Shown one piece after another: positions 49,901 through 52,900 of a DNA stretch of 64,000 bases (position 1 is its first letter; each line of letters starts with the position of its first letter). The position numbers and the translations under genes are program-made. The notes beneath the pieces were generated by a model, which searched no databases, had not been told where the DNA came from, and saw nothing but the letters and a program-made list of their open reading frames with translations. This DNA is from Octopus sinensis (lineage: Eukaryota), in the NCBI RefSeq assembly GCF_006345805.1, contig NC_042997.1, positions 51,584,001 through 51,648,000 of the forward strand, written 5' to 3'.

Positions 49901-52900
49901 GCATTCACTTATAAAAGCTTATGTAATTATCCAAATTTTCAAAATCAAATGAAGTGTGTAGATGTGTAAGAAAATTTATATATGCCTTCTTGACAATAAA
50001 ATAAATCTCCAATAGAAATTGGTGTCTGAATTGGGTGACTAGTACTTTAATTTACTTCCATATTAACATTTTCTCAAACTTAAATTTTCCTAAGTTGTAA
50101 GTTCATGGGAAGATATTTATACAGTGTGGGATGGAATTTAATTGTGAAGATTTTTTATAATACATGTATCAGGTAGTTGAATAACCTTTTGAAATCCTGT
50201 CACGTAAGTTGTACTACAGAAGAATAAACTTGAATAAAATGTTTGCAGCAGCAGCTGTAAATGAAGTTGTTAGTAAAGAGTAAGATCCCACAATGAATGA
50301 TAACTAAATGTAGAACATGCATCTCAGAATAATTTTTGGATAACCACAGATGTACTTTATATGTATCTATTATCTTTTACACTTTCGAATTAGCTCCCAC
50401 CAAACCAAATATCTGAGTCTGTGTCACTAATACTTTTGGGAACGGTATAAAAATCACTGCTCCCATTTTTCCTACTCTCTCTCTCTCTCTTTTGAGGTTT
50501 TACACTTACTTTAGGCAATATTACATTGTGTAGTAAACTGATGTTATTATCATCATCATCGTCATCATTTCATGTCCCATTTTCCATGCTAGCTTGGGTT
50601 GGTGAATTCAATAGGAACCAATAGGTCAGAGGACTGCACCAAGCTCCAATGTTTTCTTAATGTGGTTTCTACAGCTGGATGCCCTTCCTAATGCCATCTA
50701 CTTTACAGAGTGTACTGGATGTCGTTTTTTTCTGGCACCAGCAATAGTATGGTCACTGAGTCCTTACCAGACAAGACCCACTCAATTGAGTTGGGTACCG
50801 TACTGAAGGAAGTGATAGTATGGTAGAGGAACAAGAAGTTTCTCACTGAAGAGAATACATGGCTTTGCCAGCTGGAGAAAGAGACGTTAAGAAAAATTAT
50901 TTATTAGATTTTATTTTTTTTTTTAATAAGTTTTCATTTGAATTTTTTGGTCATTTTTCTTTTTGTTTTTTGTTTATATTTGGCTCACACCCTGTTTTAA
51001 ATATTTCTCATCAGTATAGTTAGTTTGAAAAATAATACATTTTGTTTTTAATATTTAAAAATTTCTTTTCTTAACAGTCGTGGTCTACGTGTTGGTCAGA
51101 TTAATGGGCCTGACTACTGTCCTCGTCATGGGCGCATGCGAGAATATGATCGGCCAATTGTACAGGAACATGACTGTGAAGGCTGTTCAAAACCGGCAAG
51201 TATCCTTTATAATTGATATTATCTCAAAAAATATTTTTCTTTCTAATCCAAACACTTGAAATGATCACCAGTTTCTTGAACAATTTCTTATTCATAAACT
51301 ATAAATAAGTTTCAATCAATAACATAATCCATCACATGTGACTTAGTCTATTCAGTAATAAACAAGTGGCTTTTTTCCACCTCGTAATTGTAGCTGTAAA
51401 AATAATTTTGAGTACATAGTTAGTATATGTTGAAACTATTTTATAGATGTATCTGACATCTTTTTCTGTAATTACATTGTTATTGTTGCCTCATAGCTCA
51501 GTCATCAATAGGAATTGGACAACAACATAAGTTGTTGTTCAATTCCTGTAGCTCCTTTCCATTCATTCCTGATATTTTATTTTCATGAAACATCAGAATT
51601 TTTACATGCACCTTATATGGTATGATTTTTGTACTGAGAAAGAAACCTTTTTTTTTTTTTTTGTCACTGCGACATGTTCTTTTATTCTGTCATTTCTTGA
51701 AACATAACCAGCAAATTATCATTATATTCATTTCCATCATGAATAATACATTGTGTTACACCATTCTAACACAATCTGTTATTTCTATAGCCTTTGGTTC
51801 TTGATGTAATTCATTATCTCAGCATTACTATCTCTCTATTACTTGATTCAAGCAAATCAAAACATGTACCCACACCCAAATAGCTGAAAATTTTATTACC
51901 TTACCAGACCTAATTCTGTGCTGAGTTGATAAACTCCAAATAGTCAACACCTTGGTGTAACAACCAAGTCCACCCTGTTCCATTCTGGCTGCCACTACAC
52001 TTCTCATTTACATAGATAAGAATATATATATTTCTTTACTACCCACAAGGGGCTAAACATAGAGGGGACAAAAATGGATTAAGTTGATTACATCGACCCA
52101 GTGCGAAACTGGTACTTTATTTATCGACCCCGAGAGGATAAAAGGTAAAGTCGACCTCGGTGGAATTTGAACTCAGAACATAACGACAGACGAAATACGG
52201 CTAAGCATTTCGCCCGGCGTGCTAACGTTTCTGCCATAGACATAACTTTCATACAAACTCTGCATTTCTAAGTATGCAGTTCCTGATATGATACTGGACC
52301 TAAGGGTTACTCCCCAGTATCTAACTACATACTTCATAGCTTTACCTACATGATTTCACAACATCTTCACTACTTTAATCATTGACAAACAGAAATATTA
52401 CACCATTTAGTTCAGATATATAAAAATGTGAAACTAACTTAAAACTGTTATTTTGGATTAATTGCCAATAGAATATGGATTCAAATCCTTTCAAATGTGA
52501 TATTTCATAAGAAAAATATTGCCTCTCTGATTCAGTTCATATCTGTTAAGAAGATACTGAATTCCATTTTATTGTATTTTAATATAGTTTTAACAAATTA
52601 AAAAGATAAAAACTAGTAGTAATATTTGATAGTTAATTAAAAATAAAATATCTTTACAAGTAGTAGCCATATACACTCATATATTATCATAATATTCACA
52701 TATCTTTCTGATACCAATATTTATTATCTTTCTGCTTTGATTCTTTTATGACTTGATGAACTTTTGTATTTTCATTTTAGAATCTTTGTTTCCTTCTTTA
52801 ACATTTACTCACTGTGTAGTATTTGCTTACATGCCTATACCAAATAATCCCATCTCATTTGCTCTATAATTCTTGGCTAAATATTTACCATTTAGCTCTA

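Follow-up and report, generated by a model that had tools for sequence, protein, structure and literature searches.

U2-type GC-AG introns account for under about 1% of metazoan introns. In the secreted/membrane switch of immunoglobulin mu, a suboptimal 5' splice site competes with an intronic poly(A) site, and in U12-type introns the branch site TCCTTRAY is found 10 to 20 nt upstream of the 3' splice site. A further class, the GYNNGY tandem donors, provides the commonest alternative 5' splice sites, which are mostly noise (PMC4267661). Intron 13 of an Octopus sinensis gene can be compared with each of these systems. It is a GC-AG intron of 1864 nt, located on the + strand at positions 51196-53059 of the window, that is, of the whole 64,000-nt stretch of DNA analysed; the window matched the O. 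sinensis assembly GCA_006345805.1 (chromosome CM016859.1) over 51,000 nt with zero mismatches.

As predicted from its GH20b and GH20 catalytic domains, the gene (coding span 7837-53299, + strand) is a GH20 beta-hexosaminidase gene. The rebuilt model comprises 14 exons, all on the + strand, at positions 7837-7939, 8337-9089, 27300-27412, 29198-29308, 32812-32913, 33588-33693, 36306-36513, 36818-36919, 40488-40578, 45410-45581, 46967-47057, 48205-48309, 51078-51195 and 53060-53299. Its 804-aa product is identical in sequence to XP_029634676.1, XP_029634685.1, XP_036356696.1 and CAI9715022.1. Pfam places Glycohydro_20b2 at residues 180-315 (PF14845, 2.6e-19) and Glyco_hydro_20 at residues 337-664 (PF00728, 3.3e-83). 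Human HEXB (PDB 3LMY, 1NOU) shares these GH20b and GH20 domains: 3LMY aligns with octopus residues 174-700 (E = 1e-132), and the motifs HLGGDE and RFxHRG are common to both proteins, the former reading HLGGDEV in octopus and holding the putative catalytic Asp-Glu pair of GH20 enzymes. The human protein, a soluble enzyme, has its C terminus at the position aligned with octopus residue 700; the octopus protein has in addition some 150 aa of low-complexity sequence at its N terminus, a stalk of 25 aa and a C-terminal, two-helix hydrophobic tail. The main product would then read, from its N terminus, as a signal peptide, a low-complexity stretch, the GH20 domain, a short stalk and a hydrophobic hairpin.

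The two exons that border intron 13 divide these parts between them. Exon 13 (51078-51195, + strand) carries the end of the catalytic domain and a short Cys-containing stalk. It is 100% identical in Octopus bimaculoides and Octopus vulgaris, and when compared with the mRNA of another cephalopod it shows synonymous differences in 16 codons and 3 amino-acid changes. Exon 14 (53060-53299, + strand; stop TAA at 53297-53299) carries two hydrophobic helices with a basic loop between them. Against the same mRNA, 36 of its 80 codons differ only synonymously and 5 change the amino acid, a ratio that points to selection on the exon. From its hydrophobicity, exon 14 would be a C-terminal two-helix membrane anchor, added in phase 0 to the catalytic ectodomain, and the membrane topology of the 804-aa protein is predicted on that basis.

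Exon 13 ends with AAA CCG and is followed by the donor CCG/GCAAGTAT, in which the GC occupies 51196-51197; intron 13 closes with the acceptor TTTTGTTTTCCAG, so that its ends, CCG/GCAAGTAT ... TTTTGTTTTCCAG/GTT, fit a U2-type GC-AG intron. This GC donor is unique among the 13 donors of the gene, the other 12 being GT. The earlier note had placed the end of exon 13 at 51195, the GC at 51196, a TGA at 51214 and an AATAAA at 51357-51362, and had regarded the GC as the only route that joins exon 13 in frame to the hydrophobic exon; all of these positions hold, and in the 14-exon, 804-aa model no other donor gives in-frame joining to 53060. The alternative outcomes that it had derived were also right: joining the GT at 51200-51201 to 53060 gives, by computation, a 727-aa protein ending in ...KPAS*, and reading through the intron gives a predicted 731-aa protein ending in ...KPASILYN*, closed by the TGA at 51214-51216 (+ strand). 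The predicted junctions are TCAAAACCG/GTTGACGCTG for the GC donor and TCAAAACCGGCAA/GTTGACGCTG for the GT, and the unspliced boundary of exon 13 and intron 13 reads CCGGCAAGTATCCTTT.

The junction is documented independently of these predictions. Four Logan mRNA contigs from a more distant cephalopod (80% protein identity; runs SRR5319791/3/4, SRR8281664 and SRR11869390) read ...TCA AAA CCA/GTT GAA GCC... and align without gaps over 454 nt spanning exons 12, 13 and 14. The protein junction KP/V(D/E)ADG is found in these four contigs (as KP/VEADG) and in the RefSeq and ENA models of three Octopus species; for O. sinensis the evidence is at the level of annotation, and the contigs of the other cephalopod display the junction rather than the donor dinucleotide. 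The earlier note had named conservation of GCAAGT in other cephalopods as a check, and the donor CCG/GCAAGTAT is identical in the O. sinensis, O. vulgaris and O. bimaculoides genomes. Taken together, the annotation, the three genomes and the transcripts of another cephalopod establish the GC junction as real, far beyond chance. It is already known, being part of the public RefSeq annotation. Beyond Octopus the donor was compared in Patella vulgata, where an apparently homologous phase 0 intron has the donor AGC/GTAAGTAT, with GT and not GC.

The donor had been presumed weak, an assumption that its sequence contradicts. In the GC register it matches CAG/GTAAGTAT, the U1 consensus, at 9 of 11 positions, the second-highest value for any of the gene's 13 donors, and the energy of its U1 duplex (-6.5 kcal/mol) is mid-range among them. 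The GT register, 4 nt downstream, matches U1 at 6 of 11 positions only (-3.4 kcal/mol), with A at -1 and no G at +5. In comparison with known U2-type GC-AG introns, the G at -1 and the AAGTAT at +3 to +8 that accompany the GC at +1/+2 are near-perfect, the polypyrimidine tract is normal, the acceptor is CAG, and the site is kept among related species. There is no essential difference, the octopus intron being distinctive in its position just upstream of the membrane-anchor exon. Because the anchor exon follows, non-use of the GC donor truncates the protein to a soluble form.

We infer that intron 13 is probably an ordinary U2-type GC-AG intron, spliced essentially constitutively, and that the single 727-aa form most likely reflects low-level slippage rather than a regulated switch. 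The GC probably arose when T became C in a strong GTAAGTAT donor, such as the one found in Patella, and the C at +2 would be compensated by the other donor positions. The GT at 51200-51201 is nothing other than the +5/+6 GU of the GC donor's own consensus, which makes GCAAGT (51196-51201, + strand; phase 0) a GYNNGY tandem donor as well. Occasional use of this GT would lead to ...KPAS*, whose stop codon is reached 2 nt after the start of the final exon. Compared with described tandem sites (PMC4267661), GCAAGT fits G-Y-N-N-G-Y, its cleavage sites are 4 nt apart, and cleavage at the downstream one causes a frameshift that runs into a stop in the next exon. The octopus case differs in that the upstream, productive site is GC and not GT, in that the stop is met within the last exon, which should spare the minor mRNA from nonsense-mediated decay, and in that dual use rests on one annotated isoform of a sister species.

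That isoform is CAI9715023.1 of O. vulgaris, a 727-aa protein ending in ...CSKPAS, exactly as predicted from the downstream GT, and it is the sole annotated sign of a soluble form among the three octopus annotations. The earlier note had proposed a soluble or an anchored enzyme: the anchored 804-aa form is annotated in O. sinensis and O. bimaculoides and also in O. vulgaris (CAI9715022.1), and a soluble form is annotated once, through the GT, but the read-through version is absent from the annotations. With their default penalties, STAR and minimap2 splice:hq should favour a GC-AG intron over a 4-nt deletion combined with a GT-AG intron; if so, the 727-aa isoform probably derives from real molecules. 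Exact look-ups returned no record, either for the 727-aa isoform or for window ORFs that span the donor. Short C-terminal protein queries for partial octopus ORFs of RNA origin with isoform-specific ends returned only a genomic ORF and unrelated short hexosaminidase fragments; as they missed known full-length orthologues too, this negative outcome carries little weight.

A rival reading is a regulated choice between GC (51196) and GT (51200), in which the former would yield the anchored 804-aa protein and the latter an mRNA that is stable and encodes a secreted protein of 727 aa, catalytically complete. With its stop in the last exon, the mRNA of the 727-aa form should be spared from nonsense-mediated decay, and the soluble enzyme made from it could be active; the protein retains every residue that aligns with human HEXB. 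The O. vulgaris annotation that contains it is transcript-based, having been produced with PASA on Iso-Seq and RNA-seq data (PMC10700109), and of the human GYNNGY sites that undergo alternative splicing, about 20% show tissue regulation (PMC4267661). The sequence GCAAGTATCC is, moreover, unchanged across the three octopus genomes, but this identity says little because the nearby intron sequence is equally conserved. Against regulation, the 804-aa protein is the only one that RefSeq lists, with 3 accessions for O. sinensis and 5 for O. bimaculoides; the GT register makes a poor donor, and the tail is dropped in almost no other mollusc isoform, the exception being one truncated isoform of Mya arenaria. 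The O. vulgaris annotation also contains obvious by-products: the gene has four products there, among them a 651-aa read-through of intron 11 and a 795-aa protein without signal peptide. We therefore consider a regulated choice unlikely. It is quite unlikely, too, that octopus cells truly employ the tandem donor to release a soluble hexosaminidase by tuning the GC/GT choice, possibly with U11 bound to the overlapping GTATCCTTT. If they did, the +4 frame, with its TGA two bases into the last exon, would provide a stable mRNA and a secreted catalytic protein of 727 aa beside the anchored one of 804 aa.

A second way to a soluble enzyme had been suggested by analogy with immunoglobulin mu: slow use of the GC donor would let polyadenylation occur at the AATAAA at 51357-51362 (+ strand), creating a composite terminal exon and the soluble 731-aa protein ending in ...KPASILYN. 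The resemblance is real as regards layout, since in both genes a last ectodomain exon is followed by an AATAAA-containing intron and then by the anchor exon or exons, and read-through appends a few residues and a stop. The hexamer is followed by GGCTTTTTTCC, with a CA about 15 nt past it and, beyond that, sequence rich in U and GU (TTTTTTCC...TTGTAGCTGT). O. sinensis and O. bimaculoides share 0.97-0.98 identity as far as about 51377 and 0.93 immediately past it (raw counts of 5 differences in 182 nt and 8 in 100 nt), and the hexamer is kept in the three octopus species, as is nearly all of its flanking sequence. However, the proposed signal is indistinguishable from background. As the earlier note had itself cautioned, AATAAA is common in such AT-rich DNA: the window contains 200 copies on both strands, for about 170 expected, or about one per 640 nt per strand. 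Among the 75 copies on the + strand of the gene span, 51 have a downstream window at least as GU-rich as that of the copy at 51357, and 29 equal it on all three scored features; in hexamers per kb, intron 13 lies below most introns of the gene. No ...ASILYN product was found among the clusters and hits for the O. sinensis, O. bimaculoides and O. vulgaris annotations, one of which is based on Iso-Seq. RNA structure around the donor, where a regulatory or editing element was sought, was predicted to be nothing unusual (z = 0.10). The octopus locus thus differs from immunoglobulin mu in having a donor that is not suboptimal, a hexamer at background frequency, no annotated mRNA ending in the intron and no known regulation. 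An IgM-like switch is unsupported, and we regard polyadenylation at this site as very improbable.

The donor is also overlapped by GTATCCTTT (51200-51208, + strand), which lies exactly 4 nt inside the intron, matches the U12-type 5' splice-site consensus perfectly over 9 nt and is kept in the three octopus species. The match is probably coincidental: its RTATCCTT form (GTATCCTT, 51200-51207) occurs 8 times in the window, for 8.4 expected, and GTAT is already within the extended U1 consensus. That the intron is or was U12-type, or that U11 binding there modulates the GC donor, is the least credible reading of all, since TCCTTRAY has no match anywhere in intron 13 (51196-53059), the last 40 nt form a long polypyrimidine tract, as is typical for the U2 type, joining 51199 to 53060 loses the reading frame, and Patella has GTAAGTATTAAT, without CCTT. 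It was for want of a branch site that the U12-type reading was rejected.

With intron 13 read as a constitutive GC-AG intron, the locus carries little weight for splicing biology, as GC-AG introns and GYNNGY donors are textbook categories and the junction is already in RefSeq. It matters more for annotation. Gene finders that forbid GC donors would cut this gene to a soluble enzyme, which shows why such donors have to be permitted. Of the four products annotated in O. vulgaris, at least two have the look of by-products of processing.

The more interesting biology adjoins the intron. A homologous C-terminal tail was found in 20 lophotrochozoan proteins from molluscs, annelids and nemerteans, and the gene falls within a conserved subfamily of lophotrochozoan GH20 hexosaminidases with a two-helix membrane tail. 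The tail is kept in every RefSeq isoform checked from Mercenaria, Dreissena, Haliotis, Patella, Ruditapes, Babylonia and Biomphalaria; the Mya isoforms keep it as well, except the truncated X4 (968 aa), from which the C-terminal region is missing altogether. This architecture is old and common to the mollusc, annelid and nemertean orthologues. A search of the literature for membrane-anchored mollusc hexosaminidases or a tailed GH20 subfamily found no description of them.

Sequence conservation was also followed through the intron and beyond it. Between O. sinensis and O. bimaculoides, identity is 0.97-0.98 in the first 200 nt of intron 13, 0.91-0.94 in the next 400 nt and 0.91-0.96 in the interior; the somewhat higher value at the start counts against the constitutive reading. 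A SINE-like, lineage-specific insertion of about 211 nt (52026-52236) is absent from O. bimaculoides. No Rfam family was detected in 48000-55000 at E <= 1, and the repeats around the donor site were (CT)n only. Downstream of the stop codon, 53300-55500 (+ strand) is probably a long 3' UTR of the membrane-form mRNA, its extent being estimated from conservation: identity between the two species is mostly 0.94-1.00 per 100 nt, with a poorly aligned portion at 54278-54477 that holds a (CT)n repeat. A contig from a more divergent octopod has 0.93-0.99 identity over 53300-54300, compared with only 0.80-0.87 in the intron.

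Rebuilding the whole gene using reading frames and splice sites gave a plus-strand model at 7837-53299, with 14 exons and an 804-aa protein, the length put forward in the earlier note. Donors are GT at 12 of 13 introns, and GC solely at exon 13. This exon (51078-51195) has AAA CCG as its last two codons, with GCAAGTATCCTTTATAATTGA directly after them; exon 14, preceded by TTTTGTTTTCCAG, starts at 53060 and holds a 240-nt coding stretch with its TAA at 53297-53299. The 51195-53060 join is in frame (...CSKP/VDADGL...), the 51199-53060 join yields 727 aa ending ...KPAS at a stop, and read-through of intron 13 (51196-53059) yields 731 aa ending ...KPASILYN, with a TGA at 51214. 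The note had described the GC donor as the in-frame route to the transmembrane exon, along with both truncated ends, and its observation is confirmed in all details. Its interpretation is supported in part: gene model and GC donor hold, but the mechanism of a weak donor and intronic polyadenylation does not find support.

The protein contains a Glycohydro_20b2 domain (Pfam; residues 180-315) and a GH20 catalytic domain (337-664), and structures of human HEXB align with residues 174-700 (E = 1e-132), almost to the end of the human protein. The hexosaminidase is complete, with its HLGGDE and RFTHRG motifs. N-terminal to it lie a likely signal peptide of 18 residues, judged from the sequence, and some 150 aa of low complexity; C-terminal to it come a 25-aa stalk and, in exon 14, two hydrophobic helices with a basic loop between them. 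Signal peptide and membrane topology are both predicted features.

Across 51,000 compared positions, the window shows 0 mismatches with O. sinensis GCA_006345805.1 (CM016859.1). The 804-aa model is identical to XP_029634676.1, XP_029634685.1 and XP_036356696.1 of O. sinensis, and to CAI9715022.1 of O. vulgaris (together P0122), so that the GC-AG junction is already in RefSeq, on the same assembly. A near-identical 804-aa protein is found in O. bimaculoides under five accessions. Our verdict on intron 13 is of a GC-AG intron that is ordinary, conserved and present in existing annotation, lying ahead of the exon that encodes the membrane anchor of a membrane-bound lophotrochozoan hexosaminidase.

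Conservation of GCAAGT in other cephalopods was a check proposed in the note; within Octopus, O. sinensis, O. vulgaris and O. bimaculoides share the donor CCG/GCAAGTAT along with the entire exon structure. Transcripts from a more distant cephalopod are available as four Logan contigs (3.1-3.5 kb), identified as mRNAs by their A-rich tails and an 832-aa ORF with 80% identity. Their sequence at the junction is ...TCA AAA CCA/GTT GAA GCC..., and they align without gaps over 454 nt of exons 12, 13 and 14. In exon 14, the 51 nucleotide differences between octopus and this species leave 36 codons with synonymous changes only and 5 with an amino-acid change, which shows selection on exactly the frame produced by the GC donor. 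The tail is also found in gastropods and bivalves (TM1, basic loop, C-[KR]-x-[KR]-T, then ...Y-[FV]-M-C-Y-T-[TS]-I-W...) and, in a looser form, in annelids and a nemertean. It is kept in all RefSeq isoforms examined of seven other mollusc genera, and in all those of an eighth, Mya, except X4 (968 aa), which is truncated and lacks the entire C-terminal region. In Patella vulgata, the apparently homologous intron is of phase 0 and has a GT donor (AGC/GTAAGTAT); after it come a 24-nt microexon and the tail exon. On this evidence, the octopus GC is most simply a T-to-C change inside a strong donor.

The gene is a member of a conserved GH20 subfamily of molluscs, annelids and a nemertean (proteins P0004-P0032, P0057, P0083 and P0085, and the window gene), of which no description was found in a literature search. 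Its members have a long low-complexity N-terminal extension, often Q/N-rich, and the two-helix hydrophobic tail, whose mollusc motif is C-[KR]-N-[KR]-T-I-L...Y-F-M-C-Y-T-S-I-W-M; about 35 aa of the stalk have been lost in cephalopods. The Patella microexon, KSFTDMFK (contig L009, 30841-33351), is predicted from the protein sequences to lie between the stalk and tail exons and to be alternatively included, being present in isoform X1 (907 aa) and absent from X2 (899 aa).

Contrary to the note, the GC donor is not weak. It matches the U1-complementary consensus CAG/GTAAGTAT at 9 of 11 positions, second among the 13 donors of the gene after that of exon 9, and its duplex energy (-6.5 kcal/mol) is mid-range in a span of -3.2 to -10.2. 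Four nucleotides downstream, the GT register coincides with the +5/+6 GU of the consensus at the GC donor itself and reaches 6 matches of 11, having A at -1 and C at +5. GCAAGT thereby has the form of a GYNNGY tandem donor; sites of this class have been described as the most frequent alternative 5' splice sites and ascribed mainly to splicing noise, a minority being regulated (PMC4267661).

Regulated switching between the GC and GT registers is a reading to be weighed, and we consider it improbable. Four products of the gene (804, 727, 651 and 795 aa) are annotated in O. vulgaris, and the 727-aa one (P0124, CAI9715023.1; ...CSKPAS) has exactly the C-terminus predicted for the 51199-53060 junction. 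With default penalties, STAR and minimap2 splice:hq should favour GC-AG over GT-AG combined with a 4-nt deletion, so this isoform more likely represents real molecules than an alignment artefact. Its stop codon is in the last exon, so that it would escape nonsense-mediated decay, and it would encode the complete catalytic domain. Against a switch, however, stand the poor GT register, the presence in RefSeq of the 804-aa protein alone in two species, and evident by-products in the same annotation, made by PASA from RNA-seq (STAR) and Iso-Seq reads (minimap2 splice:hq) (PMC10700109). The 651-aa product (P0003, ...MTRLW) reads through intron 11 to a stop at TGG/TAA (47058) and misses the end of the catalytic domain, and the 795-aa product (P0123) uses another first exon, starts with MSSNNS and lacks a signal peptide; each has the look of a processing by-product. 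Exact look-ups of donor-spanning window ORFs and of the 727-aa isoform returned no record. No octopus RNA-derived partial ORF with an isoform-specific end was found, by short C-terminal queries that also missed known full-length orthologues.

The polyadenylation switch proposed in the note, resembling that of IgM, is very unlikely. The layout would be possible, AATAAA at 51357-51362 being followed by CA and a U/GU-rich stretch, but the hexamer is at background level: as the note had itself cautioned, it is common in such AT-rich DNA (200 copies on both strands of the window against about 170 expected). For the 75 plus-strand copies in the gene plus its 3' region, the downstream window is just as GU-rich in 51 cases, and the three simple features scored are all matched in 29; hexamer density in intron 13 is below that of most introns of the gene. 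Identity between O. sinensis and O. bimaculoides is 0.97-0.98 over the initial 200 nt of intron 13 and 0.91-0.94 over the following 400 nt, but this step is small, and similar values are found beside donors of other introns. No product ending in ...ASILYN is annotated in O. sinensis, O. vulgaris or O. bimaculoides.

Overlapping the GC donor and conserved in the three Octopus genomes, GTATCCTTT (51200-51208) matches the U12-type 5' splice-site consensus perfectly. This is probably chance, and a U12-type intron was rejected: the TCCTTRAY branch site is absent throughout intron 13, the 3' end has a long polypyrimidine tract, the product would be out of frame, and RTATCCTT is no commoner in the window than chance predicts (8 copies, 8.4 expected). 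RNA folding (z = 0.10) and a repeat search around the donor gave nothing notable apart from (CT)n, and 48000-55000 had no Rfam hit at E <= 1.

Downstream of the ordinary GC-AG intron, some 2.2 kb past the exon 14 stop (53300-55500) are mostly 94-100% identical to O. bimaculoides, above the introns, apart from a poorly aligning stretch where a (CT)n/(TA)n microsatellite interrupts (about 54380-54470). In a more divergent octopod contig (L001), identity is 93-99% over 53300-54300 against 80-87% in the intron. This higher conservation fits, and suggests, a long constrained 3' UTR of the membrane-form mRNA.

About 211 nt of intron 13 (52026-52236) are a SINE-like insertion, which O. sinensis shares with O. 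vulgaris and which is missing from O. bimaculoides; ATAGA(T/C)A flanks it, and there is a weak second copy at 33344-33408. Intron 2 is 18 kb long, compared to 7.1 kb in O. bimaculoides, and includes about 4.5 kb of near-pure TA-rich simple repeat (about 19580-24160, GC 3-12%) and a transposon remnant (15140-16244) with a reverse-transcriptase C-terminal fragment (RVT_1, E = 5e-6) and a PHD finger (PHD, E = 3e-6). Another remnant, in intron 9 (43965-44830), encodes a Mos1/mariner-type transposase HTH (HTH_48, E = 9e-14). Six-frame translations revealed an interspersed repeat family with the signature ...FHASMGW..., in many copies (2290-2530, 10530-10860, 13970-14220, 18620-19110, 25130-25600, 29470-29880, 33900-34340, 47050-47450 and 50500-50800).
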